Shown here: positions 2,270 through 64,000 of the stretch, piece by piece | How positions within the stretch are numbered: position 1 is the first letter of the stretch | Layout: each line of letters starts with the position of its first letter | NCBI GenBank assembly: GCA_021613535.1 | Contig: CP075494.1 | Location: 4,340,001-4,404,000, forward strand | Length of the DNA stretch: 64,000 nucleotides | From: Adineta vaga | Taxonomy: Eukaryota > Animalia > Rotifera | Direction: 5' to 3' | The notes under the pieces: generated by a model | What the model saw: the letters and a program-made list of their open reading frames with translations, nothing else | What the model was told of the DNA's origin: nothing | Database searches by the model: none | Translations under genes and position numbers: made by a program

Positions 2270-4469
2270 TTATTCGTCTTCTTCTTCTTCTATCGGCACA
2301 CTGTTAGATACATTTTTAAGATAAGTCTGAGATTTTCGATAGTATTTTTCTGCCAGATCAAATTCACCATGTTCTATCGCTTGATCACCTGCTTGTCGAT
2401 AGTATGTCGCCAAATTATGACTTAAATGAAATTGTAATTGATCCAATGTTGTTGCCATACTTTTAGTTTTTGAATAACCAGAATATGAACCAATTAACAA
2501 AGGATTATAATCAATTATAGAGTGTACATTTTCCAGATTATCTAGTTCATGTAGTATTTCAACAGACATTAGATCGTGCGATACAACGCACATGATACAA
2601 CTTGCCTTTTCTTTTGAAGTACGAATAAAATTCATAAACGCTAGTGTATCGCTGAAAACGTTTGTTTCTTCTTGCGTAACACAATTAGGTTTTTCGGTTA
2701 CTATGTAAACAAGATTCAATATTTTTTCACTATTTTTTACCGTATTTGTTTGTTTTGCTTCTAAAAAAAGTATACAAATATTTTAGATTGTCGTATATTT
2801 GTATCAATCAAACATTACCTTCATTCAATGTTAGACGAGTGATTTTTGCTATAGTTTCATTGATTTCTGGATGATTCTCTTCTAAATTCGACTTTTGAAT
2901 ATATAAAGCATGTAGATAATATTCCAAAGCCAGTTTTGTTTCATCCACTAATGTACAAAGTGTTGCCAAGTTAAGAAAACTTGCTGTCATAGTCACATGA
3001 TTTGTTGTTGTAGTATTCAATCGTATTTTCTGTGCATTCATATAATAAGTCAATGCGGTATGATAATTATTCATTTCTTCATAGACGGAAGCTATATTTT
3101 CTATTGAATTTATTAGACTTAAACGATCTTGCTTCGAATCAATTTTCATTGCTTGATTATAATAATATAGTGCATTTTCAAATTTCTGCTCTTTTTGATA
3201 AATCATACCCATTGCCGTATAAACAGTTGATAATAAACTATTACAATTATTCAACATTTCTTTACTTTCAAGTATTCTATGATAGTAATTCAGTGCTCGT
3301 TCATAATCATCCCGTTCAAAATACACATTAGCAATCATCTGTAGTGTACGTGCAATCAGTGTATCATTAGCTGAAAATTTCAATGTTGAATTGTAAGTCT
3401 CCAGTGCAAAATCGATTTCACCATGACGATAATATTGACCGCCAATATCAAAACAAAATCGTGCTATATCTTCATATTTCTCTTTGGTAAGTAGAAGTGG
3501 CGCGATTTGTTTGATGTATGTATCAGCTGTTTTATATTCACCTAAGTAAAAAAGAAGACGTCCAAACAGTAATTCCGAAGAATTTTCTTTCATTTCACGT
3601 TTTGCAACATCGACATAATTATCAACCAATTGTGTATGCTTACTAGTATTACATAACTTCACAGTCCAAATATTTTCGTTTGATTCAACATTTGTAATTA
3701 CAAATACAGTTGAGAAAGCAAATAGAAATTCTTTTTCATTTAAATTTATACTATATCCTTCAACATCAGCAAAAATTGTCGAATGTACATCAAGACTACA
3801 GTTAATTTCATAGATAATTGGATATGTATCACCATCATTGTCCGCAACTTGATAAGCTTCAATATAATTTAAAGCAATATTTCTATCACGAGTAGTTGAC
3901 ATGAATGTATTTAATGAAATAAAACTACCGATATTCGCTTTTAATTTTTCCAGATCATTCGATTGTATTCGAGCGCCACGATATAGAGTAACCATGGATG
4001 ATGCTAACTTTTTCGGAGCGGCAGTCGATAATTGTTCAAGTTGAGTTTGTAGATCGATAATAAGCGATTTAAAAGTATATAAGATATCAATATCACGTGT
4101 TCTTATTGCGTTATTCAGAAGACGGTAGATAGATACATTTTTTGTATACCAATAGATAGCATTTGTCGGACTATAATGTTTTTGAAATTCATCCAATGCA
4201 CAATTGTCATCATCTCTGTCAACATATTTTCTAATCTTATTAGAGATATCTGTCGAGTTATTGATATTGTCCACTGTATAAGAATCACATTGTACATCTT
4301 TTACTAAACTTGATAATAATCGATACCAGATGAATAATGCTGATTCTCTTGTTAAATGTAGTGATGATTGTGATTGCAAATTGAGTAAGGAGAAGCCAGA
4401 AGAAAACTTTTTATCCAAACCATCATGATCTTGTATCGATTCAGAATTATTATTTAAGACATCAATCAT
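2270..4469 (-). CDS. NAD:arginine-type (R-S-E clade) ADP-ribosyltransferase + TPR repeats + C-terminal receiver-like domain, ~713 aa, 2 exons
   Basis: ART motifs LYRG, FMSTT and NEKEFLF, then about 6 TPR-like repeats. A 58-bp intron at 2761-2818 (GTAATG...TTTTTAG) joins ORF 2808-4469 in frame to ORF 2270-2719 (1651+491 nt = 714 codons). An acceptor-like site near 4493 suggests a possible further 5' exon. Confidence 0.85.
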
Positions 4470-7697: not shown

Positions 7698-9449
7698 TCA
7701 CTCGCATTCAAAATTCAATCGTTTTTCTAAACGTATATTGACAGCTTCTGGTGCAATAATAAATTTTTCTGTTAAAATCATGCCTTCTTTGAATTTATCA
7801 CCGGGTTGAATTGTATACAAACGTAAAAGACGTACTAAACACATTTTCAATTCCATTAATGCAAATCGCATTCCTACACAATTTCGAGGTCCCATACCAA
7901 ACGATAGATATGCAAGAGGATGACGTTTCACAGAGTGTCGTTCTGGATCGAAAACATTCGGATCTTGTGGACCCCAAAGATCAGCATTGTAATGAATAGA
8001 ATAAACATCAGGTAGAATCACACAACCTAAATAAATTTGATTTATCATAATTTCTTAACGAAAATTTTATCACATGTCGATTACTAATTACCTTTATCAA
8101 TCTGATGACCACCGATATTCACTGACGCATTACTTTCTCGATTAATTGCTTGAGTTGATATGCCATACATTCGAAGAACTTCTCGTACAAACATATCCAT
8201 ATATGTCATATTGGCTATAATATCATAATCAAGATTATCAATATCATCATTCCAAATTTCATCGATTTCCATTTGTAATTTATTCTGAACATCAGGTGTG
8301 GTTGCCAAAGCAAACGTTGCAAATGCTAGAGCATTTGAAGTTGTTTCAAAGCCGGCAAGCATAAATAGAAAAGCATTAAGTACAACTTCATTAGAATGCA
8401 ATTTTTTCGATGACAATTCCTCCGATGTATCATCCTATAGAAGAATTAAATATTGATAAAGCAATCTCCAAGTGACTTTTAATATAATCTGACCTTAATC
8501 TCGTCTTGTGTTGATGCATCTAACATTAACTGAAGTAAATCTGTACGTTTATTTTCAGATGTCAATCTTTTCTTTAGAACTTCTTCTAATCGTTCAATCA
8601 GCCATACTGCAGGAATATCATCATTTTCGAATGTCGTATTTGATATGCATTTTCGAATTGTTTTTTTCACAAGCAGACCAATTTTAAAAATTTGAGTTAA
8701 TAATGGAATGAGAAATGGCATTACATTTGATAATTTAACGATGAACAATTTCTCAATATCAATTTCAAAGCAAGCAATAGACTTTTTCATATAAACATTG
8801 TCTATATCGTTTTGCATATCTGTATCAATACCAAATGCACAACCACCTAGAATACAGTCGATCGGTTCGTTTCAGAGAATTAATCTTAAAAATCATACTT
8901 ACATATAACATCCATAGTCATTCGTTTATATAATGCATAGATATTAAATTCTTCGCCATTCGTATCGTTTATTTTGTTCATGAAAGATTCAATACATTGA
9001 TTTATTAATGGTGTCATCATTTTCAATTTTGCTGCTGAAAACGTTGGATTGATAACATGTCGTTGGCGTCGCCATTGATCTGCTTGAGCAGAGAATAGAT
9101 GTCCTCGGTTACCTTTGATACTACGCGTGATAAAAGGTCGTCGACGTGAATGGAACGATGAAAATTGTTTTATAAAAACTTCTTGCAGAAAATCTACATC
9201 AGATACAACATACACTGGACGTGTTCCTTCGAATAGACCATAAATACTGCCGTATTCTTTAGTCCATTTCTGAATTTGACGTGAATAAAATGGTACATTC
9301 CAAAGTGTTAGATAATGTCCAAAAAAGAATTGAGGTAATGGACCAGGAATATTTCGACGTACAAAATAATCATAACGAGATTTTAACGTATATAAATAAG
9401 TAATAATCAAACAGATAACAATCGTAAGTAGAATAATAGCGATAAACAT
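7698..9449 (-). CDS. Cytochrome P450, CYP3 clan, 4 exons
   Basis: N-terminal TM and PGPLP hinge, C-helix WRRQR, I-helix AGFETTS, K-helix EVLR, PERH, heme motif FGMGPRNCVG. First intron 8847-8902 restores DVICGCAFGIDTDMQ. Confidence 0.93.
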
Positions 9450-13866: not shown

Positions 13867-14732
13867 TCAAGTTGGTAATCGAAGATATTTATTCATTGAA
13901 CGTCGTGGCGGAATGATGGCATCAAAAGCTGCGAATAGAGTCTTGCCATTTACATTTCCTTCTTTACGTTCTACTGACCAACCTTTATACCATGGCATAT
14001 TTTCCGATGCTTCAATCATATTATCACCATGCCATCCAGAAATAGGAACAAAAGCAATCGTTTCTGGTTGATAACCAATTTTTTTCATATATGAAGATAA
14101 TTCATGTTTGATTTCATTAAAACGTGCTTCAGAAAATGCTGGTTCAGTTAAATCCATTTTATTGACAATAACAATCATCTGTTTTACGCCTAATGTATAT
14201 ACTAATAGAGTATGTTCACGAGTTTGACCTGCTCTTGAAAAACCAGCTTCAAATTCACCAACACTAGCTGCTACTACCAATAGTGCACAATCAGCCTAGA
14301 CACATAATATGAATTCTTCATTGTGAACTATAAATGAATATAGAGATGTGTATACCTGCGAAGTACCAGTTATCATATCCTTTACAAGATCATTACGAGT
14401 TGGAACATCGATAACATTTATAACATTTGAATTGGTTTCGAATTGAGGAAGTGAATTATCGATTGTTATATCACGTTCTCTAGAAGATCTCAATTTATTC
14501 ATGATCCATAGATATTTAAATGAACCTTTGCCCATCTATTCAATATTTCAAATATATATAATATTAGAGTTTTTAAAAAAATCATTACTTCAATAGCTTC
14601 TTTTTCATATCTTTCGAATATTTGTCTATCGATACCACCACATTTGTAAATTAAATGAACAGATGTCGTCGATTTTCCTGAATCTACATGACCAATAACA
14701 ATAACATTTATACGTGTTTTATCTTTATTCAT
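13867..14732 (-). CDS. Divergent, truncated elongation factor 1-alpha paralog (G domain only, ~250 aa); may be a pseudogene
   Basis: Exons 14589-14732, 14356-14535 and 13867-14295 splice in frame. Retains [36 protein letters not shown] and [10 protein letters not shown]. Ends RLPT* followed in frame by DVYN (canonical RLPLQDVYK); no domain II/III sequence recognised after that. Confidence 0.85.
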
Positions 14733-15791
14733 CGAATGCAACAATTCAATTCAACGAGTCGACTAGCAGATTTATTGTTATTTAGTATGACGGCATATTT
14801 CACAATTGTTTACGTCAAAAACTAAAAGAAATGAACTCACTTTTTCGAAAAAATATTTTTGCTTATATATATATGAGTCATAAAGAAGTTTTGTTTTTTT
14901 CTTTTGTATTGAGAGTCTGTTGAATAAAGTTGGTTGGGCAATAACAGTCGTTGTAGGTGCAATTCTTTCTGATGTGTTGTTATTCTGGTACATGACCATC
15001 TAATGGCGTTTTTTTTTCAACACACTGCTAAATGTTAATCAAAACAAATAAATGCACGAAACTATGCTGCTTATTATTCAGTAAATTTCGAAAATAGGAT
15101 GATTGCTTCTCCATCAGATCCCTATGGAAGGACAGAAAGCAGAAGTTGATCAAATGTTACGGTTTGTCACACAAAATTAACTCGATGAAATAACTTCATT
15201 TGTAGAGTAGTCTCAATACAACAGTTAAATCTATATATAAACCAATTAAGTACTCTCGATGTACTACACATATAATAATCATCTTCGCGAGTTGTTTATG
15301 AAAGATGTGGGCTCACTTACGTTTGTTCCTTGCTATCATCAATTGTGCAGATATTACCATCTTATTCATTTCAAATTTCTTTCATATAATTTTTCGATAA
15401 AAACTTTCATTGAACGCCGATAACATTTGATAAATTACTTGGATGTATGAAATAATCGAGACCACTTCCATTCTAATATATCGTTGTGAGTCGTTATATC
15501 ATGAGAAAAAAGAACGAGTAGATGATTCAGTTATGATTAATATTGTCAGTTACGACTGGAATGTACTTTTAGAAGAATAAATCATACACATACGTACAGG
15601 AGATGTAGAAAACATAAAGAAATGACTGAATTTTGTTTACATCACCTTATCATTCTATAAAATAGTACATTTACGATGTACTTTTAAAGAAGAAGAACGA
15701 TGACGCATAACCAATAAACGTATGCTTTGTAACTTTAGATATAAAAGCATGGATCCAACGTAGACGATGTATGTCTATTTCAACTTAAAAA

Positions 15792-23643: not shown

Positions 23644-24679
23644 ATGGATCCTTGGATAATATCATTTCTCGGTTATCTTTCACAACAATTGGCTATTTAT
23701 TTAGGAATTACAATGTTAATTGCTGGTTTATTAGGAGGACTATTAACCATTGTTGTATTTCTTAGTCTACATACATTTCGAGAGAATTCTTGTGCATTCT
23801 ATTTAACTATTATGTCAATTTTCAATATTGGAAATTTACTTGGTGGCTTATTTACTCGTATAATTATTAGTGGTTTTGGTATTGATTGGACATTGAGTTC
23901 ACCATTTTATTGTGCATTTCGATGGTATTATCTTTACTTTGGTGTTTTAACGTCATTTTCAATGATTTGTTTTGCAATCATTGATCAATATTTAGCAACA
24001 TGTTCTCATCCTTATTGGCAACAATGGAGTAATATTAAATTTGCTCGTCGTCTATCTTTAGCAGTGATTCTTATATGGCCTATTCTTGGAGTACCTTACA
24101 TGTTCTTTTTTCAAGTTATTGAACAACCATCGTCGCAAAAAAAGATATGTACGAGTGTCAATACAGTTTTTTTCAAATATCATACTTATGTTTATATAAT
24201 TACTCTTTCCGGTATTTTACCGATTTTTATTACAATTTTATTTGGATATTTAGCCTATCAAAATGTTCAAACATTAGCTCATCGAACATTACCATTAGTT
24301 CGACGTGAATTAGATAAACAAATGACAAAAATAGTTCTTACTCAAGTTGTTCATAATGCTTTTGTATCGATTCCTTATGTAGTTATTATTGCAATTATGA
24401 ATAGTCCTTCTGCTCCAACGAATCCAACGACAGTTGCTGTATTACAATTTGCTCTTCTGATCACAATCTATTTGTATTATTTCAATTATATGGTTAGTAA
24501 TTTGATTTTCATAAATCGAAATCTTTTTCTTTATTATGTTTTAGAGTCCATTTTACATTTATTTTGCTTCATCTGAACGATTTCGTCAACAATTATTTTT
24601 TGTTCTATTTAAAATTCATCTGAAACGATGGCGACGAAGAAAAGGACTTGTAGATCAAGGCAATCCGCAGTTTTTATAG
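23644..24679 (+). CDS. Orphan rhodopsin-family GPCR
   Basis: FRENSCAFYL, AIIDQY, PLVRRELDKQ. Intron 24493-24544 adds the exon SPFYIYFASSERFRQQL...PQFL*. Confidence 0.9.
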
Positions 24680-24965
24680 ACACGAACTAATAGAACTGTA
24701 GCTTTGTAAAATATACTAATAAATGAATTCAAAGATTAAATTTAGAATATATATGAAATGGTACGTTAATAACAGAAATAAATCGACACTGATACGCAAT
24801 CATGCATTACTAATAAATAAACTATAATGAGTTTCTTTTAATGACATAGATGATGAAACTATTTTAAAAGTATGTCATATTATAAAAAAATGATTCTTCG
24901 TTCATCCATTGCAAAAAACAAGCTGTTTCTTTTCATTTTCCCTTATTCATCAATTCTCAAGAGAA

Positions 24966-25450
24966 ATGTCTTTACTATCATCACTATATAACATTTAACA
25001 ATATGTAATTGTAATTGATAGTCCAATATTGATAGTTATTAGAAGTATTATTTGTCTAATAAATCTAATAGTTTTCACAAAGAATACTTAACGAGAAAAT
25101 CCATGTACACTCTGTTTTATTGCTATGAATATCGTGAATTTTCTATATTTTTACTTTGATTTACTACCGACAATGCTTTCAATTGGTTATAATATTGATC
25201 CAAGTAGACATAATATTATGTTTTGTCGATTACGTTATTATACTGCCTGTGTTTTGACGAGTTAGCAATTATCTTGTCTCATTTTAGCTGCCATAGATCG
25301 TCTATGTATTACTTCACCAAATGCTAACATACGAAAATTTAGTACCCGTCGTTTCATCATTATATGCATGATCAATCTATCTTTATTTTTCTTAATATTT
25401 CAAAGTCATGCATTGATTTTTACAGAAATTTTGCAATTTCCACCGGGTAC
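24966..25450 (+). pseudogene. GPCR pseudogene (TM1-TM4 remnant)
   Basis: Reads MSLLSSLYNI*QYV...KNT*RENPCTLCF...FCRLRYY...TS*QLSCLILAAIDR..., with three in-frame stops and truncation after TM4. Confidence 0.85.
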
Positions 25451-26177
25451 GACGTCCGACAATGAATTCTCGAATTTTGAATAGTAGAACGAAGCCAGTT
25501 TGTAGATCATATATATTTCAGTCGAAAGATCAACAATCATGCCGATCTATTTGCACATAACACAATATAATGAAAAAAGTACCGAACAATCGATTATACA
25601 ATTAACATTCTTATGATACTTTGTCGATAACAGTATTGTTTGTTATACAAATATTCTAGTTTCAAAAATGTATCGTACAGAATTGATACGTATATTCTCT
25701 AACACGTATGTTTTTTATGTTCATCATTTGAAATAATATAACCCTATGCTGTCGTAATCGTTTCTATTATCAAAATCTGACACGCTCGAAACAGTTCATT
25801 ATAGAGAACATTATTCATGTGCTTTGTTTTTCTTTTCTTTTTTGACTTTTACCGATGATATTTACATTCATTAAATATCTCAATGCATAGACTATAGCGA
25901 TGAAGTATGAGTTTTTAATCTGCTCTTACATTGAATGAAAATGGTTTATGCTAAAAAAAACATGTGAAGACTGCATGTAATTCTTACATTATGTATCTTA
26001 ATGAAAAAGAGCGGAAGTAGAAAAGAAACAAAATGAACGTTAGCTAGTTCTATTATAACATCAAAGAAGGAAAGAATAAAGAATTCAATAGTAGAATCAT
26101 CTTTTTTTATTCATTTGATAATTGACATACAGCGAGTAGACAAGTATCGACAGCTAATATTAATTTAAATTAAAAAA

Positions 26178-27056
26178 ATGCCTTCGGAGCTTTTCTACTC
26201 GTTCAACTTTTCTATTTCTATCATAATTTCGATTATCGGTTTTGGATTTAATTTTCTAATCATAATTATTATCATTAATCATCGAAAATGTCATACTGTG
26301 AACTACTTACTTACCAGTGATTTATGTATTTCTTCACTTATCTATTTCATTTTACATCTGATTGGATGTTATTTTGGTATTCGTCATGATTGGCAATTCA
26401 ATCAACCATTATGTGTTTTTCGAGCCTATTGTATCATGGTATCTCTATCTGCTATGACTTATTCATTTTTAATACAAGCAATTAGTCGATTATTTTTTTC
26501 TGTTTTTTATACACATAGATTTTTACTTAATTGGCGTACGCATTGGATTTTAGTTCTATTAAAATGGTTCGTTAGTTTTGTATTAGGAATAAGACCAGTT
26601 CTTATTGAACATGGATTTGAATTGATCAAAGAACATCGAATGTGTGGAATTAAAACAAATAAACGAACTATTGCACCTTATTCAATTGGTCTCGTTTATG
26701 TTCTTCCGAAAAGTATTGCAATTATAGTTTATGGTATAATTTTCTATCAAGTTCGTCTCTCATCCAATCGAGTCAAATCAAGAAATGTATCAAATTTTAC
26801 AACTGCTTGTATCACTCTTACGTTTTTCAAAAAAAACTTGATTCTCATGCGAAATATGTTAATTATTTTAAATATTCTTCTATGTGGAGGAGCACCATAC
26901 TTAATTTTGATACTATGGGATTTGATTCTCAATGGAAGTGCACCAAAAGAATTGTATTTTTTGTCGGTGAATTCATTAGTATTAGCGGCGACAGTTATGG
27001 CAATCGTCACATTTTACAAAGATAGAAAAATTAGAAATCATGTATGTGATTGTTAA
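26178..27056 (+). CDS. Orphan rhodopsin-family GPCR, intronless
   Basis: 292 aa, 7 hydrophobic segments, LCVFRAY, QAISR, CGGAPY. Confidence 0.85.
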   Translation: MPSELFYSFNFSISIIISIIGFGFNFLIIIIIINHRKCHTVNYLLTSDLCISSLIYFILHLIGCYFGIRHDWQFNQPLCVFRAYCIMVSLSAMTYSFLIQAISRLFFSVFYTHRFLLNWRTHWILVLLKWFVSFVLGIRPVLIEHGFELIKEHRMCGIKTNKRTIAPYSIGLVYVLPKSIAIIVYGIIFYQVRLSSNRVKSRNVSNFTTACITLTFFKKNLILMRNMLIILNILLCGGAPYLILILWDLILNGSAPKELYFLSVNSLVLAATVMAIVTFYKDRKIRNHVCDC

Positions 27057-27509
27057 TTCGAATTCTAAGCTATGCAAATGAGATAGCTGTACTGAACTTA
27101 TACATGATGGTGTTTTTAAAGTATTTAATAAATAATTTCTATTAGATATTTTTATCTAATTAAATATGTTTCTAAAAAAGATAATTGGGAATGATCTAAT
27201 ACATAAAAGAAGGATATTTTTCGCGTAAAATCATTTCCTTTTTCTTTCAACTTCATCAGGAGAACCTTTTCGAAAATGTCATTTTTATATTAAAAAAAGT
27301 CCTCTAATAATAATACAACTTGTTACCATTCGGCATTTGAATGAATATCAATCAAACTGCTGCGTAATGGAGAAAGTGAAGTAGAGAAGAGCATAGAGCG
27401 GATAAAATCATGAAATATGAGAAAAGACATATAGGAGGGAGAGAAATGCGACTACTATGTCGCAGTTCCTAGCTCGTCTGAATCAAGAACAATTGATTGG
27501 GTCCAAATA

Positions 27510-27690
27510 GTGACATTCGTTTGAGTTTTAGATGCATTCGTACCTACAACAGCATATTCTTCTTTGACTGCTTGTAGCCAAGACATTATTCGATGATTAA
27601 AATAGTCAACTACATACATAGTACCAGGACCAATTTAAATGATTCAGATCATTTCCCTCACCATTACCACCTCATTGACAACTAAATACG
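27510..27690 (-). pseudogene. NHL-repeat protein remnant
   Basis: Minus-strand fragments GGNGEGNDLNHLN and GTMYVVDYFNHRIMSWLQAVKEEYAVVG match NHL-repeat consensus; broken by deletion or frameshift. Confidence 0.6.
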
Positions 27691-28225
27691 CGATCATTAA
27701 CGTTGATCACCTATTCTAAATCGATCATCTTTGATAGATGGATACACACCTGAGTATAGTTACATGACCTTCGTTAATACAGATATTAGAACGTGAATGT
27801 ATGACTTATCATCGTTCACATCCACTTCATTTTATATAAATTCGAATTAAAGACACATGCGCATCCTAACATAACATTCTTCCGTGAATATATTTTTGTT
27901 TGTTCAGGTGAGCATAGTTCATCTAGAAGTTTGATATTTAAGTGCATTTGGGTATAATATTTTAAAATGTCACTAATTGTTGTCTTTTTCTTTTTTTTTC
28001 TGAAACTTTGTAGACGTATACAAATGTTTGGATAGAAAAAAATTTTTATCTCGTTTTTCTAAAAAGAAGATTCTCGTTTAATTTTATTTTTTATAAACAT
28101 TTCCTCACTTATCTTTTCTCTCTCGTATCAAAATGAAGCACGCATTCATTTATTTTTACAATATTATTTAGAAGCTACAACTGGATCGTGTTCAACGCTA
28201 ATATTATCAACGAATATTTATTAAG

Positions 28226-29125
28226 ATGGATTTTGCTTCAATTATTAATCGAATATATATACTTGTTAGTTGTTGCAATTTTTGCATTGCAGCGGCTTTT
28301 CTTACTCTGGCTTTTCTCTATCGACATCGATGCTTCAATTTTCCCACACTCCTAGCTTGTAATACTGCTCTAGCTGTTTTGATCAATTCTGCTAATCACA
28401 TAGCAACAGCTGTCTATATGTTTATATGGGATCAATATCTAGTACCTGATATGGATTCATTATGTGCATTGCGTGCGTATCTGCAGCATTCAACTGTTAC
28501 TTGCATTTATCATTCATTTATTTTATTAGCTATTGAAAAATATAATAAGGTTATTGGCATTAGATTTCTAAATACTAAACACCGAAAAATTTGTTTGGTA
28601 CTTTTTCAATGGATATTTGATTTTACTTTTGATTTACCTGTTTTAGTCACAGGTAATATGACGAAACTTTCATTTGATAATGTATGCTTTGTGAAATTAA
28701 CACGACTTGATCTTTCATTATATATGGCTGGAGTGTCATTCTTATTAACCGATATTGTTTTAAGTATAATCTATCGATTACTAGTACGTCATGTGCGTCA
28801 AGTCTCGGCAAGACTCGATAATAATCGACAAATGCGGATGCAACGAGATTTAACTATGGTTCGTCGTATTATTTTATTAAATCTTCAATTAATCATAGTC
28901 GGAATACCGGTACTTATCGTCGTTGTCTTCTCTATAGTTCGTGTCGATCTTGTGCCTAACAAATTCATGCGTGTCATTCTTTTAATGACAATTTTACCGT
29001 ACTCACCTCTGCTTATTATTTTGTTATTACTGACACCAAATCTACAAGAAATTCTCAAGGAATGGCGAAATAAGTTCAAATTTCGTATGACAACAGGAAT
29101 TACTCCTATACAAATCGTAGCATGA
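28226..29125 (+). CDS. Orphan rhodopsin-family GPCR, intronless
   Basis: 299 aa, 7 hydrophobic segments, LLACNT, LCALRAYL, LAIEKY, RDLTMVRRI. Confidence 0.85.
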   Translation: MDFASIINRIYILVSCCNFCIAAAFLTLAFLYRHRCFNFPTLLACNTALAVLINSANHIATAVYMFIWDQYLVPDMDSLCALRAYLQHSTVTCIYHSFILLAIEKYNKVIGIRFLNTKHRKICLVLFQWIFDFTFDLPVLVTGNMTKLSFDNVCFVKLTRLDLSLYMAGVSFLLTDIVLSIIYRLLVRHVRQVSARLDNNRQMRMQRDLTMVRRIILLNLQLIIVGIPVLIVVVFSIVRVDLVPNKFMRVILLMTILPYSPLLIILLLLTPNLQEILKEWRNKFKFRMTTGITPIQIVA

Positions 29126-29396
29126 CATTATCACGCATCATACTTATTTCATTAATTATTATCCGATGAATTTATCTCATACATTCGAGTCACTATGCAT
29201 TTCGTCAATAATTCACATTCGTATTCAAAGAAAAGAAGAACTATTGACTTAAGAGAAAATGCAAAATTAACACAGTTTATGACATTTTTCTTTATTTTGA
29301 AAAAACAAAAAAGATTCAAATACATTTTATATATTGCGAGAATAAAAATAAAATATAAATTTTAAACTTATGACCTTTTCACTTATTTTTCCGTTC

Positions 29397-30023
29397 TTAT
29401 TTCATAAAAAATTGTAAAACTAACAATGAATAACATGCTACTGTTGCTATATTAAAATACTGTGCCGTGTCTGTATATTGATTATTAGAAGGCAACAATG
29501 ACGTCCTATTTTTCATGTTTACGTTCATATCTTTGTCTTTCTGATCAGCTGGCTGCTCGAATACATATACAAAATATTCCAATGCAACAGAAATCGTTGA
29601 AAATGTCATAATCAACCAGAAACATAGATGACCTAATCTTGAATATTTTAAATTTAACATATCTGTATAACTCAATGCAAAGAATTCATAAAGAATAAAG
29701 AATGCCATCGAATTTATTGTTATCACTTCATGTGAACCAAAGATAGGTATGAAAAGACTTAACAATTGTCCTAACATTGCTATTAAATGAAAGAGATTTT
29801 CCATGGTAATAATAAACATTTAAAGTCGATAATCTTTGAATTTCAGATATCCAATAAGACAAATCCAAATTGTATCAATAATTCCATAGCACACAAAAAT
29901 ATAAGCCATACAAGGACGATGTACCATTTGTTGATAGTAATAAATTAACAAAGAGAATGGCATTAACGATAAAAGTAATGGCTGATACAATGGGAAGGAT
30001 AATACCTGCATAAAAAAGCACAT
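29397..30023 (-). pseudogene. Multi-pass membrane protein, interrupted by an in-frame stop
   Basis: Two hydrophobic ORFs abut in the same frame, separated by a single TAA (CTT TAA ATG, 29820-29822). Splice acceptor at ~30006; the candidate upstream exon also contains stops. Confidence 0.5.
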
Positions 30024-30835
30024 GACTGATGTGAAGCAATCACAATGATCAGCATTCTTCTATAATTAGATCTGCGTAATTAGTTCTTTTTTATAAGATA
30101 AGAAATCAGATCGTCATCGATTATTATGAAGAAAAAGAACTGGAACCGCAAAAAGCATGTACGTTGGAGAAAAAGATAAGAGATGATCAGAATAAATAGA
30201 ATCAAAGGAATATGTAATAGAAAAGGAATTACGGTACTTCATGAGGGTATGTCTTCATGGTCATATCTACATACTTTGATGAGATAAGACAACCAATTAG
30301 ATCAAAATATATAAACGACAGATGGTAATTTTAATGACAATGGATAAATTTTTTAGATCTTTGTTCAAAAATGATAGATTTATCAATATTGGTGACAGTA
30401 TTTTTTAAAATATGTCTTTGATTTAAGCTATTCTTCATTCACATGTTGTCAGCACCCGAAATAAATCTCATTCAAGTTCTGTACTAATGCTAAATCATCT
30501 ATTTGAACAATCAAAAATCATCGGAAATATCTGAATATTTTATTTCTTCGCCTTTAGTCTTTCTGAAATGACCCTCCGATTTTGCCAATGATAGTACACA
30601 ACGAAATGAGTATTGAACACTAATTTCTATGCATATATTTTATATGAATTCAATTCATCTTGAAATCTATATTTATACATGTTGATACATTGATCAGTGA
30701 TGAGAAATTTTCGGAGCTTTTTTTTCCGTTTTGTACTTTAGAGGAGTACTATGAAAATATGATGAAATTCCTCATTTCTGCTTTGCTTTTATGCTTCTTT
30801 TTTGTTCATACATAAAATGTGAAGTTTTATTATTT

Positions 30836-31865
30836 TTATGGTTCTATTTGATTGTTGTTTTGCAATCGTAGACGGAATCGATCGAGATGCATTTTAAATA
30901 GAACATAGATCAATTGTTGACGAAACCTCTTCGATACACATGTATATATGTAGAATGCACCCTAAAAATCGAAAAAAAAATCATTTAAATGTTATTTAAA
31001 ATCGATAAATACTAACCATAGAATAAAGATAATAAATAAGAATGCATATATTTAAAAAAATACCCAGTATAGTTTTACTACATATATCGAGTCTATTGTC
31101 TGCAATATTATTATAAATGGTTACAATTGACATTGGTGTCATAGTAATAATATTGTAAATAACTTGAATGAGAACCATCGTTGTTAATTGTTTATCTAAT
31201 TCTCGTCGAACTAATGGAACTGTTCGATAAGCTAGTTGTTGTACATTTCGATATGCTAAATATCCAAATGAACCCATAATCGTTAGTGGAAAAAGTGTGA
31301 GAAGAAAAATTGAATGGAAATAATCGTAATATTGTGTAAAAATAGTACTGGTAACAATACAAATAGAATTGCCTGTACTCATTGATATAGTATGATTATA
31401 AGTCAATAGAAAAGGAATACAATATAAAATTGTACATAGAAATATTCCTATAACGATGGATCGAGCGAGTTTAACATTATTTAATCGATACCAACGAACA
31501 TTAGAAAGTGTTGCTAAGAATTGATCAACTGTTGCTAAACACATACATGATATCGATGTTAATAGACATACTTGAACATAGTATGGACGAAATTTACAAT
31601 AAAATAATGATTCATTTGGCCAATTAATTGCAAATCCATTAATCATAATAAATGTTAATAAACCGGTAAATAAATGAAATGTATTAACACTTGACATCAT
31701 TGTTAAATAACATGCACATGAATTTTGTCGAAATGTTTCAAGACTAAGAAAAATAAGTAAAGTTAAGAGATTACCAATGAGACCAAGAATAAAAAGAGTA
31801 AAACCAATATAAATAATCATGTGTTGTGATATAGAATTTAAAAATATGATTGTAGAATTACACAT
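30836..31865 (-). CDS. Orphan rhodopsin-family GPCR, paralog of 23644-24679
   Basis: FRQNSCACYL, ATVDQF, PLVRRELDKQ. Intron at the same position (30962-31015) adds GAFYIYTCVSKRFRQQL...IEP*. Confidence 0.9.
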
Positions 31866-33270: not shown

Positions 33271-34230
33271 TTATGAATTATTACATTTCAAAAACTCTCT
33301 CATTCGATTCTGATCCCATGTTTTAAAGTTTTTCAATTTACATAATTCTTGAAGACGTTTGTTTTGATTTTTCTCTAGATAATTACCTACGAATTGTTCA
33401 ATTTTATCGATCAGAAAACCAATAATAAGATAGTAAATTCCACCAGTAACTACTGCAGCAACTATGTTGCTTGAAAATAAAGGAAAAATCCAAGTGAAAC
33501 AAATTGCAAGGAAGAACGTGACCAGTAATTTGAAATGTTTTTGTCTTCGATCTTCTTGGATTAGATCAGTTTTAGTAGTATGAGTTAATCCATTTCCATA
33601 CAATTTTCCACTTTGAGTTTTATATGTAAGTACATGTCGAAATACAATAGATATTCTTTCTCCAATTTGACTTTTTTCTTTTTTGATTCCATGCACATAA
33701 TGTTTGTTAGTTTCTTCATCTAGTAAGAATAGAGAATTTCCTGGAAGATTTACATTTAATTTTTGTGGTCCATCGAATGTGCTTTCTTGCTTTTTCACCA
33801 AATCCATTTGTCTACTGACGCCAAGACTTACAACTGCAATTTTTGAACCAGATGCTAAATCTAACATACAATCACTATGTAGACCCATACTTTCTTGTCC
33901 ATCTTTATAATAAATAATATGAGCTAAATTCCAAGTTTCTCCTGTTCTGTGTTCGATTGTCTGCTTCAATTTTTCTACCGTTGGTGTCCATGACGAATAA
34001 GCAACATTATTCTGAGGAACGAGTGCAATTTTACATCTATACCATGGTTGATCTCCAGATGAGTTCACACTTGCTTGAAATGCCATTAATCGTGGAAGAC
34101 GAACAAGTAATTGATCTTTTCCTAACGCATAATATTGTCCATATTGAATTTCACCATTTTCCGGTCTTAAACAATTCAATGCTGATACAGCTTCATCGAA
34201 AGGCAAAAGATTTTCGATTAGTTCCGCCAT
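33271..34230 (-). CDS. AlkB-family 2OG-Fe(II) dioxygenase with two C-terminal transmembrane helices
   Basis: YKDGQESMGLHSD (HxD), IAVVSLG, HYVHGI and ERISIVFR (RxxxxFR), followed by two hydrophobic helices; intronless. Confidence 0.85.
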   Translation of the reverse strand: MAELIENLLPFDEAVSALNCLRPENGEIQYGQYYALGKDQLLVRLPRLMAFQASVNSSGDQPWYRCKIALVPQNNVAYSSWTPTVEKLKQTIEHRTGETWNLAHIIYYKDGQESMGLHSDCMLDLASGSKIAVVSLGVSRQMDLVKKQESTFDGPQKLNVNLPGNSLFLLDEETNKHYVHGIKKEKSQIGERISIVFRHVLTYKTQSGKLYGNGLTHTTKTDLIQEDRRQKHFKLLVTFFLAICFTWIFPLFSSNIVAAVVTGGIYYLIIGFLIDKIEQFVGNYLEKNQNKRLQELCKLKNFKTWDQNRMREFLKCNNS

Positions 34231-56329: not shown

Positions 56330-56816
56330 TCGTCGTTGATATAATTCATAAGAGTTTTTACGCATCCATGAAAACTTGTTACTCATAATTTTTTCGTCTG
56401 TCGTTTTTAACCAGCGATTAAATGGACTGAACAGCTAATAATTCATGACGAACTTGACCGAATTCATAGAATTTATTTTCACTATCACCACTTAGTTGTT
56501 CGACATTAAAAAATACTTGATTCTCAAATAGATCAGGACTAAGATATTTAATAAAATAGAAGAGCACTCGTTTGTCTTCTTCCATAAGATATGACCAATT
56601 ATGATGATTTCGATACTTTCTCATATCTTGATCATTGTAGTCAATAACTGAGAGAACACAACTTAAATAATACATAGGTCGAGCAAGATCATTATCAGGA
56701 GCTGTTGCTTTTGAACTTGTTGGACGGAAACCGAATAGATCTCGAAAGAAATCTTGAGGGTGTGGGTGTGACTGAGGATGTATTATATTCAAACCGTTAC
56801 TTTCATCGACACTCAC
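56330..56816 (-). pseudogene. Degenerate copy of an uncharacterised protein
   Basis: The ORF ends LLAVQSI*, but protein-like sequence continues in shifted frames (IAG*KRQTKK..MSNKFSWMRKNSYE). Confidence 0.45.
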
Positions 56817-56955
56817 ACCTTCAAAATTATTTTGTATATGTTTCAGCTCTTACTATGATCGGTGATCGAATGCATTCGATGACTCAGTTATTTATTCAAA
56901 GAAAAACATTGTTTCATAAGTGAAGAAAGTCAGATATTTATTGTTATCAATTAAT

Positions 56956-57852
56956 TTAGTTTTCGGTTTTACAAACCAAAAAACTATCAGAACTAATAAA
57001 ATGACAAATACCATCACCGGGTCGTTTATGTAACATACGGAATGCCACATGTTCTTTGCCAAAATTATGTGTATCCAGATGACACATAGCATACATTTTG
57101 ATATCATTGATTTCCTCATTATAATCGACAATCACTTGTTTCACAATTGTACCTTTAACAGCATGACAAAGATAAAGTGTATTGCAATCTGATGCATTTG
57201 TTTTCATTGAATGACAAACAATTGGATTACCATTACAACCAGTAATTTGACTAACTTCTAAAATAGTAACATTAAATGTTTCGGGAAATGGAAGTTGAGC
57301 TAATTTTTCATCTTCTTTCAAAATTTCAATCTTTTCATTTGAAACATCAAATAAATCGGATGCATACGATTTTATTTCATCTATTTGATGAAAACATTGA
57401 CGTATTTCACCTGGAACATTGTTATCATTATTACAGATCGAAATATTTGAGATTTCACAAGTATCAATGACCTCATCATCATCATTAATTTGATGAACAT
57501 CACCCCATGGTCCACCAAATGAGAGTGTATTGTTAACTGCTAGAGATGTTGGGTTCTGATACCATCCTTGATATAAAGAATGATTGAATGGTTTCTTCGA
57601 GTTTTCTTCATCAAATTCGTAAGGCTTTGCTTTTGAATGGTGATGATAACCGTTTGTTTTACTTCTTTCCGATACTTGAATATGATTTCGACGAACATAT
57701 GATTGTTCTTTTTCATCCGATTGAGTATCGACACTAACTGCACGAGTTCTTGGATAAACTATCCATCGCCAATTAGATTTCAAGTTTGGATTAATAATAC
57801 CATTCGAGTTTTTCAGAATTAATGCACAAATAATAATTAATATCAATTTCAT
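56956..57852 (-). CDS. Secreted BURP-domain protein
   Basis: Signal peptide; C-terminal CH-x14-CH-x26-CH-x24-CHF with AMCHLDT.NF..EHVAFRML..RPG..ICHF, matching the plant BURP consensus; intronless. Confidence 0.9.
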   Translation of the reverse strand: MKLILIIICALILKNSNGIINPNLKSNWRWIVYPRTRAVSVDTQSDEKEQSYVRRNHIQVSERSKTNGYHHHSKAKPYEFDEENSKKPFNHSLYQGWYQNPTSLAVNNTLSFGGPWGDVHQINDDDEVIDTCEISNISICNNDNNVPGEIRQCFHQIDEIKSYASDLFDVSNEKIEILKEDEKLAQLPFPETFNVTILEVSQITGCNGNPIVCHSMKTNASDCNTLYLCHAVKGTIVKQVIVDYNEEINDIKMYAMCHLDTHNFGKEHVAFRMLHKRPGDGICHFISSDSFLVCKTEN

Positions 57853-59937: not shown

Positions 59938-60462
59938 GTGGTCGACGAAAATCGTTCATACAATTGTTTTTCCACAATGAACAGACAAATAGATTTTCGG
60001 TACTGGCAACAAGCACGCGATGCATTCATACAAGGAATAGGACTTATGGCTGCTAGTTTAGTTTTAGGTGGTTCTCATGCATCGAATAATGAATTTAATG
60101 GTCGACTGATCGATCAATTTCGTTGTTCAAGACTTTTGATGGATGGAATGACTATTCGTCGTTTTTATGTATACGAAACTCTTATTCGTCATAACTTTGT
60201 CGTTTTTCAAACTGACACAGGTCACACTTTTAAAGTTCATCTAATTGCCGATATCGATCCTGGATATTATTCACCGGTTTATGTTGATATCTTATCGACT
60301 TACTGGAAGCCAGGTGGAAGATATGTCGGATGCTCTAACAGAAGTGCGCTGGAGTTAAAATGGTTCGTACTGCTAGAAGTTCAAAGGTTTGGCAACTACG
60401 AAGTGGGTATCAATGATTGTCGACATTTTGCTCGATCCATAGCAGCATTTTTAGCCTGTTAA
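59938..60462 (+). CDS. Permuted papain-like (PPPDE/DeSI/LRAT-type) thiol enzyme, paralog 1
   Basis: His strand RHNFVVF precedes NYEVGINDCRHFA (cf. YxLxxxNCxHF). The true start is uncertain (ATG 59977 or a spliced upstream exon). Confidence 0.7.
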   Translation: MVDENRSYNCFSTMNRQIDFRYWQQARDAFIQGIGLMAASLVLGGSHASNNEFNGRLIDQFRCSRLLMDGMTIRRFYVYETLIRHNFVVFQTDTGHTFKVHLIADIDPGYYSPVYVDILSTYWKPGGRYVGCSNRSALELKWFVLLEVQRFGNYEVGINDCRHFARSIAAFLAC

Positions 60463-61634
60463 TCGCATGTTTTGGAAGATGTCAGAGATACTCATAGTAT
60501 AGACACTATTCTCAAATATAATAAAAATAAAATTTGATAAGTGAATATTTTTAACAATTGAGTTTTAAATGAAAATATTTCTTAGATCTTTTCATAGTAT
60601 AAATTCGTTTTCATTAGTTGTTAATTTGATCCATCATCGTACATTTTGCCGATATGCAAAATACTATACTATTCTTCAGATTCTATTTCCTATACACAAT
60701 AGGATCATTCTATATTGTATTATCATCGATCAAACATGTATGACATCATTCAATGCATCAATTAGTATTTTAACAGTAAAAAATCTTCATCGAATACTCA
60801 TCGATCAAAAGATCGCCAATTGACTATACTATGTTATTGACTGAAATAGCTATCTATATTCTCTGTTAATAGACATGCTTAATATCTACCAAAATCGTTT
60901 CGAAACAAAATAGTTGAAGGGTTATTCAAGTTTTGTCGACATCCACTCACTCATAGTGGCTGATGGTAGACTATTTCTGTCGCCGTAATTTTACTGATCA
61001 CTTGGTTAAAGACGAAAATGTATATTTATCTATTTTGTTTATTATTACAAGTGTAATAGTATTTTGAAAGTTTTGTATACTCATAAAATATTTTTTATGA
61101 TTGCCTTCATATTCTAAAATAAGTATTTGCTTAGCTGTCGAAATAAAAGAAGAAAAACAACTTCGATACAATGTCGATGTAACTATGTGCATTTGATTCA
61201 CCCTAAGTGAAAGGTTAACATTACAATATAGTTTTAAGAGGTACATTTGAAAATAATAATAAGGCTTTATTTAGTAAAGAGATTTTTTGTTACACTACAC
61301 ATCTGTATACAATTTTTACAGAAGATATAATGACGAACTTATTTTATTCCAATTTATTCTTAGAAAATTGATAAAAATTGTACTATTTGTGAAAAATGGA
61401 ATCTCGAGTATTTTTTCTAATCGAAAATTGATTTTTTTTTTGTCTCGAAAGACTTTAATCCACCTTTCAATAAGTTATCACCCACGCTGTTAACGTCATA
61501 TTTGTTAAGCTGAAAGAAAATATTGAAAGCACTTTAAAAGGATCATATTCGATATCAAAACTCAGTACCTAGCTCAAAGTGTGAATTGATCATTTCTGAT
61601 TGAAACGATTGGTTTTTCTATCAACGTCGAGAAA

Positions 61635-62906
61635 ATGCCATGCAAAGGATCATTTCAACTATTCATCTGGACATTAACTATGGTTGTTTTTATGTTCATG
61701 AATGATGAAACAACAGCAGCAGCAGCAGAAAATCCATGCAAAAATACGAGTTATGGAAAAAATACTCTGAAGCCAATGAGAGATCAAACAATCGCTGATT
61801 CTTTCGTTGACTTATCTTCGTAAGTTTCATTATCTTCAACTGGAAATAGTTTCCAAAATTAAATAATTGTCTGAAAAACCTTTTTTTTTCTTTTAGGTAT
61901 AACGAACTCGAAATGGTTCCTAATCGTTTTGAAGCATCCGACGTTGTTCTTAGTCGTGATGGTCATGTCATGTATGTTGTCTTTGATAACACTTATCAAA
62001 TAGGTGCACTCTGTACTTCATTGGGACGTTCATTTAATTGTACTGATCGTTTACTTTCATGGCCAGATTCATCATTAGATGGAAAAGACTCAAGTTTTGA
62101 AGGAGTGACTTATAATCCTCTGGCAGGTACGTATTTTGTTATACAAGAAACAATACCAACGAATTCGAAGAAAGTATTTCAAGCAAATGTTTTTGAAATT
62201 CGTATCGATATGAAAGATTCAATACCTATTCGTGTAGTTGAATCTTGTATAGTCAATTGGGAATTTGGATCAGAAAATAAAGGTTTTGAAGGTCTTGAAT
62301 TTGTTTTTCATGAACGATCGGGACAAACTTATTTGCTTGGATTATGTGAAGCAAATAAATGTGATCATACGTCAGCCTCTGGCAATGATGGACGTATCGT
62401 TGTTCTGGAAAAGAAGCAAGCCACTGCTAAAAGTAATTCATATTATCTCGAAAAAAAAAGGAAATTTTTATCAAATGTTATTTTTTTTTCAAGGAGAATG
62501 TGTATGGCAACCTGTAAGTACAGTTGATTTGCCATCATCTGTTCGTTTCACTGATTATTCAGCTATATCAATTTATCATCAAGAATCACGTAAATTACCT
62601 ACCTATGTGGCTGTTACAAGTCAAGTTAACAGTCAATTGTGGATTGGTCGTATTAATGAAATAGATGAAAAGCCGTTCTTTGAATTTTCACAACTCAATA
62701 AGAATACAGTATATAATTTACCACGAACTACCGAAACTGCATCTGAATGTCAAATAAAATATTGCAATATTGAAGGTGTAGCATGGCGAGGTAAAAATCA
62801 ACTTATTTTAGTTTCGGACAAGGCAAAAGCTGAACAAGGTGCTCATTGTATTGAAAAAGATCAAAGTGTTCATTATCTTGTGTTACCAGAACACTTGACT
62901 GATTAA
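61635..62906 (+). CDS. Secreted beta-propeller protein, SdiA-regulated/YjiK-like, 3 exons
   Basis: Signal peptide; introns 61820-61896 and 62433-62493 restore the frame; repeated blade motifs FEASDV, FEGVTYN, NKGFEGL, NIEGVAW and LVSD. Confidence 0.75.
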
Positions 62907-63671
62907 AATACTCTTCTTCTTTTCATTGTAATGGATTGATTTATCCCTTACTAATAAAAAAATAAAGAAACGCTTAACTGACTTTGCCGATATGGTCGTT
63001 TTGATTTATTATCACATCTGCACTTTCTTTCAAGCAAAGCAATCAGTCATATAATATTTCAGAGTTCGATCGTCAATGTTTTCAATATCTTCCACGTGCT
63101 ACAGATCACGTCGAGGAGACATTGATTTATGAGATAAATTTATAGATTGTTTGTAAACACTACAATTAATTGTGTTTTTCGTCAACATACATTTGAGAAC
63201 GTTTCGCATGTTACTTTTTCTACATTTCTCGTCAACAACAACAACAACAAACACAAATATGACTAACCGTCAATATGGACATGACCATAGTGCGCAGCCT
63301 CGAGAACAGAGAAAAAAGATATGCATATTCGTCGTACCTTTCCAGGTAAATAAAAAACAGCGTTATATTTTGTTATGATATGTATCATACATTGATCGAC
63401 GTACTGAAAAGTGCACATTTTCATTATTTCTTTTTCTTTTAAGAATAATACATGCACGTATATAGATAGACAAACTGATCTGAGTTGTTCTCAAGTATTT
63501 TATTTTGTCAATAGTTCAACGATACCATATTCTGAATGCTTGATAACATTTAAACAATCTTGATATGACACTTTGAAATTTTTCTTTTAATTACAGATTT
63601 TAGATTTACATAAAATCATCTTGAAATGAATTCTCTATGATAAAAACTCATTCGATCTGGTCAACAAACAA

Positions 63672-64000
63672 ATGGATTTTTTTAGAAAACCACGTGAAAC
63701 ACTTATGCAAGGTATAGGAATTCTTGCAGCTACCTTGTCTTTAAGTGGTATGCGAGTATCCAATAATGAATTTAACGATCGATTTATTAAACAATACCGT
63801 TGCTCCCAACAATTCAAGGATGAAATGACTATTCGTCGATTTTATGTATATGAAACTCTTATTCGTCATAACTTTGTGGTTTTTCAAACCGATACAGGTC
63901 ATACCTTTAAGGTTCATTTGATTGCTGACGTTGATCCAGGACATCACACACCGGTTTTCGTAGAAATTGCACCGACTTATTGGAGACCAGATGGTAGATA
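63672..64000 (+). CDS. Permuted papain-like enzyme, paralog 2 (runs off the window end; absent from the ORF track)
   Basis: Translates to MDFFRKPRETLMQGIG...MTIRRFYVYETLIRHNFVVFQTDTGHTFKVHLIADVDPG..., nearly identical to the core of 59938-60462. Confidence 0.85.
   Translation, partial: MDFFRKPRETLMQGIGILAATLSLSGMRVSNNEFNDRFIKQYRCSQQFKDEMTIRRFYVYETLIRHNFVVFQTDTGHTFKVHLIADVDPGHHTPVFVEIAPTYWRPDGR

Follow-up and report, generated by a model that had tools for sequence, protein, structure and literature searches.

We analysed a 64,000-nucleotide stretch of the genome of the bdelloid rotifer Adineta vaga (hereafter termed the window), which corresponds to positions 4340001-4404000 of contig C5 in an assembly of six contigs and 100.8 Mb in total. 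Its reverse strand carries, at positions 56956-57852, a gene for a protein with a C-terminal BURP domain. Burpitides and BURP cyclases are described as plant-specific (PMC11253845). An initial annotation of this DNA had noted an intronless, secreted open reading frame (ORF) with four Cys-His (CH) motifs and had assigned it to the BURP family, and both the 298-residue ORF and its CH pairs are found as described. The features of the gene, in window coordinates, are as follows.

56956-57852 (-): complete, intronless coding sequence of the BURP precursor, from the ORF list; 298 amino acids, ATG start, TAA stop at 56956-56958
57799-57852 (-): signal peptide, residues 1-18, read from the sequence, with probable cleavage after S-N-G
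57688-57792 (-): single core-peptide unit, residues 21-55, homologous to the 38-amino-acid tandem units of the orthologues P0002, P0003 and P0004
57751-57774 (-): putative core octapeptide NWRWIVYP, residues 27-34, recognized from its invariance in orthologues, the contrast in identity between core and spacer, and a DNA pattern unique in the window
57637-57645 (-): His-rich linker H70-H72, between core unit and folded domain; His-rich stretches lie at the equivalent place in orthologues
56959-57591 (-): folded BURP domain, residues 88-298, from the AlphaFold2 model, Foldseek and VIA-align
56977-57450 (-): part matched by the Pfam BURP profile PF03181, residues 135-292 (profile positions 67-213 of 216)
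57211-57216 (-): CH motif 1, C213 H214
57163-57168 (-): CH motif 2, C229 H230, 14 residues past motif 1
57079-57084 (-): CH motif 3, C257 H258
57001-57006 (-): CH motif 4, C283 H284, spliced out in the NCBI gene model
56891-56942 (-): short 3′ untranslated region with two AATAAA signals (56937-56942 and 56891-56896); transcript-like contigs stop at 56893

The N-terminus of the protein has the form of a signal peptide, with K2, a hydrophobic stretch over residues 3-13 and then S-N-G, and a similar hydrophobic N-terminus is present in all full-length orthologues. The orthologues in Adineta steineri and Adineta ricciae are likewise encoded by a single exon, and the two AATAAA signals lie 14 and 60 nt past the stop codon. 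Residues 1-280 are identical to the A. vaga NCBI model I4U23_023154 (387 amino acids), which drops the last 18 residues, including CH motif 4, and joins the downstream ORF at 56418-56816 instead. We rejected this model because the C-terminus is conserved in every orthologue, because CH motif 4 is invariant throughout the family, and because a contig from data set X1 (56893-57149) runs unbroken over both the supposed splice site and the stop codon. For the downstream ORF, neither a Pfam match nor coverage in the sequencing runs that are guessed to be RNA was found.

Domain, fold and metal ligands

The PF03181 hidden Markov model (HMM) matches the protein with 67.8 bits (E 1.3e-18) against a gathering cut-off of 27, and a six-frame scan of the A. 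vaga genome with the same profile gives 68.5 bits at this gene. Among PDB sequences, the sole meaningful match is the peanut BURP peptide cyclase (8SY2/8SY3). An AlphaFold2 model of residues 88-298, computed from an alignment of 135 sequences, has a mean predicted local distance difference test (pLDDT) score of 91.8 and a predicted template modelling score (pTM) of 0.87; with the five Adineta-type sequences alone, the pLDDT is 35. The BURP fold sets a beta-barrel opposite a beta-sheet and is unique among solved structures. When this model was compared with the PDB by Foldseek, only the four chains of 8SY2/8SY3 were retrieved (E 1.7e-8 to 5.3e-8, template modelling score 0.57-0.63), with the next entry at E 0.07. 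VIA-align against 8SY2/8SY3 gives Z 14.6 and a root-mean-square deviation of 2.9 Å over 160 residues, and its next match has Z 3.5. The alignment to 8SY2 spans model residues 5-211, and residues 88-134, which the Pfam profile leaves unmatched, therefore belong to the fold; pLDDT is 92-98 for the first 30 model residues. By HMM, fold and invariant residues alike, this is a true BURP domain, and the family assignment made in the initial annotation is borne out by both the profile and the structural comparison.

In the alignment of 135 domains from rotifers and plants, no columns are invariant except those of the four CH pairs. In the plant cyclases, the four His residues form two type-2 copper sites and the Cys residues act as disulphide staples, and mutants in which His is replaced by Ala are inactive (PMC11253845; PMC12186524). 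The spacers between the pairs are 14, 26 and 24 residues in all five Adineta-type proteins, which departs from the canonical CH-X10-CH-X25-27-CH-X25-26-CH arrangement (Hattori 1998, as quoted in PMC11253845). Over the bdelloid clade, the first spacer ranges from 10 to 17, and the Didymodactylos protein P0007/P0154 has the spacer of 10. The altered spacing is a matter of loop length, and the motifs themselves are retained.

The C-terminus also differs from that of plants. The A. vaga protein ends in F-L-V-C-K where plant proteins have W-V-P, and the conserved terminal Trp (W-[VI]-P) is absent, as the initial annotation had remarked together with the long first spacer. Bdelloid proteins share the ending F-x-[LIVM]-C, in which C294 is invariant within the clade. 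Further Cys residues conserved among bdelloids are found at positions 132, 206 and 223, giving ten conserved Cys in all. C223 sits in the four-residue insertion that lengthens the first CH spacer, and C294 takes the place of the plant terminal Trp. It is reasonable to suppose that these residues form two extra disulphides in the bdelloid clade.

Putative N-terminal core-peptide units

The protein has the modular architecture of a signal peptide, optional member-specific repeats and, at its C-terminus, a BURP domain. As in fused burpitide cyclases, a candidate core peptide that contains Trp and Tyr precedes the domain on the same polypeptide, and the whole is laid out like a plant 'fused' burpitide precursor, with signal peptide, N-terminal core unit and C-terminal BURP domain.

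The N-termini of the orthologues consist of tandem units with an exact period of 38 amino acids. Each unit carries NPN, two variable residues, usually YQP, the motif NWRWI[AVS]YP, an acidic spacer of approximately 18 residues and the sequence R-[VI]-R-R. In the A. vaga unit (residues 21-55), NPN and two to four variable residues precede the core, and an acidic spacer after it leads to a terminal V-R-R. There is one such unit in the A. vaga protein of the window, and there are two in A. ricciae (P0002), four in A. steineri (P0003) and five in the metagenome protein P0004. Identity between species is 0.90 in the core octamer and 0.18 in the spacer, and N27, W28, R29, W30, I31, Y33 and P34 are invariant across the orthologues. 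A degenerate DNA pattern for NWRWIxYP occurs once in the window, against zero occurrences expected from 100 shuffles. In A. steineri and P0004 the signal peptide abuts the first NPN, so that cleavage by signal peptidase, together with proprotein convertase cuts after R-x-R-R, would give all units one common N-terminus. A conserved aromatic motif, a freely varying spacer, basic ends and a variable copy number are the marks of a multi-copy propeptide.

The initial annotation had pointed to three aromatic segments as possible cores, namely NWRWIVYP, SLYQGWYQ and SFGGPWG, all of which are present in the protein. NWRWIVYP, being the conserved block of a unit that is tandemly repeated in orthologues, behaves as a core peptide would and is the probable substrate; its two Trp residues and one Tyr are candidate cross-link residues. 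The other two proposals do not hold. SLYQGWYQ and SFGGPWG are single-copy, invariant among orthologues and located inside the folded domain, where they are covered by the 8SY2 alignment and by high pLDDT, and they therefore belong to the structure of the domain itself. A His-rich stretch separates the core units from the domain (HHH in A. vaga, HHHHH in A. ricciae, and also present in A. steineri), which could act as a metal-capture element.

Other bdelloids carry different repeats in this position. The Didymodactylos carnosus protein P0154 has at least nine 19-amino-acid units around SSF[GD]LVGNY, placed before a domain with the plant-like X10 spacer, and P0155 has two copies of a unit that contains GIARWA. 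These repeats look like lineage-specific candidate cores. Separate lineages have thus placed different Tyr/Trp repeats on one domain, as plants do.

Several further observations concern the core units. A search of the A. vaga genome for stand-alone precursors of the NWRW type, such as a split pathway would use, returned the BURP gene itself and nothing else. In A. steineri, the orthologue is preceded, 1 kb upstream, by a near-identical BURP copy with several cores (L003:6439-7482, + strand), which is ended after CH motif 1 by an assembly gap. Tandem duplication or faulty assembly would account for this copy, and it was not used as an example of a precursor-only gene. A weak match of P0004 to the Pfam family DEFB136 was also rejected, as it is below the cut-off and falls in the repeat. 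Finally, a contig of data set X3 ('organism B') matches window positions 57747-57829, from signal peptide to core, and then continues with 68 letters unlike the window, which suggests a related strain or species with another spacer or repeat number after the core.

Residence, family and origin

The gene lies 4.4 Mb into a 16.9-Mb A. vaga chromosome, between genes for G-protein-coupled receptors (GPCRs), a low-density lipoprotein (LDL) receptor-domain protein and a Kelch protein. The animal-type neighbours comprise four rhodopsin-type GPCR ORFs, one LDL-receptor class A protein and one Kelch protein. GC content is uniform across the window at approximately 30%, and the BURP coding sequence is host-like in both overall GC (0.31) and GC at third codon positions (GC3, 0.19). 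An independent data set from 2013 (X7, DNA-like) covers the gene and both flanks in 30 of 30 bins, and the upstream block (window positions 59959-63998) shows collinearity with the region that flanks the A. ricciae orthologue (L004 3144-6507). Given the matching GC, the animal neighbours, the coverage in X7 and the synteny with A. ricciae, the gene is the rotifer's own, in keeping with the animal-type genome noted in the initial annotation, and contamination or chimerism is effectively excluded.

Contigs from three runs of three studies that are guessed to be RNA are confined to 56893-57829, that is, to the ORF and approximately 60 nt 3′ of it, and leave the intergenic flanks bare. This is the pattern expected of a transcript, and it provides modest evidence that the gene is expressed. 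Purifying selection acts on the gene: in comparisons between the three Adineta genomes, the ratio of nonsynonymous to synonymous substitution rates (dN/dS, Nei-Gojobori) is 0.15-0.21 for residues 88-298, at a dS of 0.9-1.5, and 0.25-0.45 for the N-terminal part. Relative to the window, the independent data set differs at 0.65% of ORF sites, with four of the five differences synonymous, whereas several pieces of the flanks differ at 2-4%.

When 1.84 billion representatives, all predicted proteins, were searched exhaustively with the profile, 189 matches were returned. Below the Adineta clade is a tier at 60-163 bits in which every named member is a bdelloid: several paralogues of D. carnosus, proteins from Rotaria sp. 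Silwood1 and Silwood2, and a second A. steineri paralogue. Named plant proteins begin at approximately 56 bits. All named rotifer matches come from Adineta, Rotaria and Didymodactylos and all named non-rotifer matches from plants; no other animal, fungus, protist or prokaryote is named among the 189, and the 14 control genomes gave no such match either. Rotifer and plant domains are only about 20-25% identical. In A. vaga, the gene described here is the only intact one, accompanied by one pseudogene of a second bdelloid paralogue on C3 (G000:C3:13633483-13636623, L002; match at L002 1489-1978, - strand). The pseudogene has three in-frame stops and a 26-residue gap, has lost the segment from CH motif 1 to CH motif 2 and carries DH in place of CH motif 3; it adjoins eIF4A-like DEAD-box exons, and A. 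steineri P0013/P0157 represents the same paralogue in intact form.

A careful tree built by maximum likelihood from 80 rows and 216 columns (LG+C20 with posterior mean site frequencies (PMSF), unrooted) unites the 23 bdelloid rows in one clade with support of 100/99, outside all plant subfamilies and approximately one substitution per site from all plant-side rows. This clade attaches basally, between two plant groups of weak support; Marchantia, Ceratodon, Adiantum and a PG1beta-like legume protein fall in one of them. A quick tree had placed the bdelloids on the bryophyte, fern and PG1beta-like side with 99% support in the Shimodaira-Hasegawa-like approximate likelihood ratio test (SH-aLRT). 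As that placement was not upheld in the careful tree, no donor is assigned. On the plant side of the tree, with P0079 and P0035, are the BURP genes of an eukaryote-like metagenome contig of 21.6 kb (L006, from ENA), which form a tandem array at 2075-2980, 8414-9256 and 14627-15532 with a period of approximately 6.3 kb.

A family whose nearest relatives are non-metazoan, which is absent from other animals in predicted-protein searches and which is integrated among host genes has the pattern of a horizontal acquisition. This agrees with the foreign or relict origin put forward in the initial annotation. The most economical account has the family acquired once, long ago, before Adinetidae, Philodinidae and Philodinavidae separated, and duplicated afterwards, and it fits the foreign gene content of bdelloids, in which approximately 10% of genes are foreign and some of these come from plants (PMC11258130). 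Most likely, the family entered the bdelloid stem once by horizontal transfer from a donor of the plant lineage.

Two other accounts of where the gene came from were weighed. That it belongs to a plant or other contaminant, or to a chimeric assembly, might be suspected from the plant-side position of its nearest non-rotifer relatives; yet its place on the chromosome, its composition, the 2013 coverage and the collinearity with A. ricciae all speak against this, as do the orthologues and paralogues in three bdelloid families and the distance of their clade from plants, and we regard the chance as negligible. The alternative that an ancient eukaryotic BURP gene was inherited vertically and lost nearly everywhere but in plants and bdelloids, or that its donor did not belong to the plant lineage, bears on origin only. 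It draws on the nesting of the bdelloid clade in no plant subfamily and on the eukaryote-like metagenome contigs that also carry BURP genes. Vertical descent, however, would demand very many independent losses, the searches described above named no animal, fungal, protist or prokaryotic carrier other than the bdelloids, and plant genes are known among the foreign genes of these animals; we assign this alternative a low probability.

Elsewhere in the window, the four GPCR genes are intronless ORFs of the 7tm_1 rhodopsin family with 289-310 amino acids, located at 23644-31865, three on the + strand and one on the - strand. A protein with a NAD:arginine ADP-ribosyltransferase domain and tetratricopeptide (TPR) repeats is encoded at 2808-4469 (-), and no link between it and the BURP gene was found. 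An ORF for an AlkB-like 2-oxoglutarate-Fe(II) oxygenase (33271-34230, - strand, PF13532) was considered as a tailoring enzyme and rejected, as it lies 23 kb away and nothing ties it to the BURP gene.

Proposed function and alternatives

What is established for this gene is its family and fold, the four copper-ligand His residues and their partner Cys, its residence in the rotifer genome, purifying selection, the repeats of its orthologues, and a monophyletic family that is found across bdelloids. The span of that family, and the presence in orthologues of several cores with convertase-type ends, go beyond what the initial annotation contained. We lean, with modest confidence, towards the view that the protein is a secreted precursor and cyclase of the fused burpitide type, adapted to processing by animal convertases, with a full mechanism whose chemistry is predicted. 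The precursor would enter the secretory pathway, where the BURP domain would bind copper through H214/H230 and H258/H284 and, with O2, would act in cis on its own NWRWIVYP core, cross-linking the side chain of a Trp or Tyr. Cleavage by proprotein convertases at the terminal dibasic or R-x-R-R site of each unit, together with further trimming, would then free a small macrocyclic, Trp/Arg-rich peptide with a plausibly defensive role. No evidence was found that bears on the other suggestion of the initial annotation, a cross-linking of extracellular matrix. After its entry into bdelloids, the family would have duplicated and acquired lineage-specific cores, with NWRWIAYP in Adineta and SSFGLVGNY and GIARWA in Didymodactylos.

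The closest parallels to such a system are the plant fused precursor-cyclases, including AhyBURP (8SY2/8SY3), LbaLycA for lyciumins and CcaBURP1 for cercic acid, which share the layout of signal peptide, Trp/Tyr cores that are often in tandem, and C-terminal BURP domain. LbaLycA has twelve cores before its BURP domain (PMC11253845). The rotifer proteins resemble them in the four invariant CH pairs, in the fold, and in the lineage-dependent sequence and copy number of the cores. They differ in having an animal host, in the CH spacing of 14/26/24, in an additional conserved Cys within the insertion, a C-terminal Cys for Trp and ten clade-conserved Cys, and in units that begin with NPN and end with R-x-R-R of the proprotein convertase type; their cyclase activity is predicted. 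The split cyclases (ArbB2 with ArbA2, which yield arabipeptins or cyclopeptide alkaloids) are copper- and O2-dependent BURP proteins that act on repeated units of recognition sequence plus core. Their cores end in Tyr, as does the SSFGLVGNY repeat of Didymodactylos, whereas core and domain of the rotifer protein are on one polypeptide.

Several points weigh against a cyclase function. A first CH spacer of 14 and a C-terminal Cys in place of Trp are unlike every characterised cyclase. The CH pairs are retained by all BURP proteins, including plant members with no known cyclase role, and conservation of the ligands therefore does not prove activity. Unique N-terminal repeats are general among BURP proteins such as RD22 and PG1beta, and their meaning is often unknown. 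The A. vaga protein itself has one core only, with a V-R-R end and not a full R-x-R-R site. Prediction of a complex between the BURP domain and residues 19-60 gave a score of 0.01, with a disordered partner and without use of the alignment, and counts neither for nor against the cyclase. The RNA label of the three expression runs is a guess, their data are contigs and their coverage is thin, and the assignment of a donor had to be dropped.

These points leave room for a true BURP protein that is not a peptide cyclase but has another extracellular or vacuolar role, for example in stress or desiccation in the manner of RD22, in metal binding or in wall or matrix association, as proposed for many plant BURP proteins, with repeats that are structural or released unmodified. 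The non-cyclase plant proteins RD22, USP, BNM2 and PG1beta are stress-linked and share the four-module layout, in which a signal peptide and a short segment precede member-specific repeats and the BURP domain; in plants, expression of BURP genes is mainly tied to abiotic stress (drought among others), and no function is known for most members (PMC11253845). Bdelloids are anhydrobiotic, several of their paralogues have no visible repeats (P0013, P0017 and P0020), the His-rich linker would suit metal binding, and the CH pairs, being universal in the family, do not discriminate. On the other hand, with their conserved aromatic cores and basic cleavage sites, the rotifer repeats have the look of processed peptide units. 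Selection keeps a short Trp/Tyr motif next to a free spacer, between processing sites and in variable copy number, a pattern that marks a peptide product destined for release rather than a structural linker. Moreover, independent lineages have evolved different aromatic repeats on one domain, as in proven plant cyclases. We consider a non-cyclase role unlikely, though deserving of appreciable weight. A released peptide might also be an ordinary one, as in an animal multi-copy propeptide for antimicrobial or signalling peptides, from which NWRWIAYP would be freed without cross-links and in which the BURP domain would be a carrier or folding scaffold. The R-x-R-R ends and the varying copy number suit this idea equally, and a Trp/Arg-rich composition resembles that of linear antimicrobial peptides. 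A mere carrier, however, would not need a copper site, and here every catalytic ligand is kept and the BURP part is more constrained than the N-terminus; the pairing of the same domain with unrelated repeats in Didymodactylos is a further argument against it, and we give the idea little credence. A copper-dependent cyclase acting on its own cores thus remains the reading that we prefer.

A broader proposal, which we advance tentatively and with somewhat less confidence than the mechanism itself, is that this would be the first burpitide pathway encoded by an animal: a plant-type copper cyclase, captured a single time before the bdelloid families split, rewired to signal peptidase and proprotein convertase, and yielding lineage-specific, side-chain-macrocyclised Trp/Tyr peptides from multi-core precursors. 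Our search of 8.4 million papers found none that pairs BURP with rotifers or bdelloids, and the two papers pairing BURP with horizontal gene transfer were plant papers. Database pipelines already label several rotifer proteins automatically as 'BURP domain-containing'. A study of the biosynthetic genes that bdelloids have acquired makes no mention of BURP, or of peptides made by ribosomes and modified after translation (RiPPs), in the text and supplements covered (Nowell et al. 2024, PMC11258130). The non-ribosomal peptide synthetase (NRPS) and polyketide synthase (PKS) clusters described there are likewise foreign natural-product genes that are kept, expressed and plausibly defensive; they are of bacterial or fungal type, whereas the BURP pathway would be ribosomal and of plant type.

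The cyclase reading is directly testable. If it is true, copper-dependent peptide macrocyclisation would extend to Metazoa and would define a new class of animal RiPP natural products, and the naturally divergent cyclases of bdelloids, with their other loop lengths and disulphide patterns, would offer enzymology and peptide engineering new enzymes as well as new cores. It would also clearly exemplify how a ribosomal natural-product pathway of plant type has moved into an animal, where it would complement the non-ribosomal clusters that bdelloids use against fungi.

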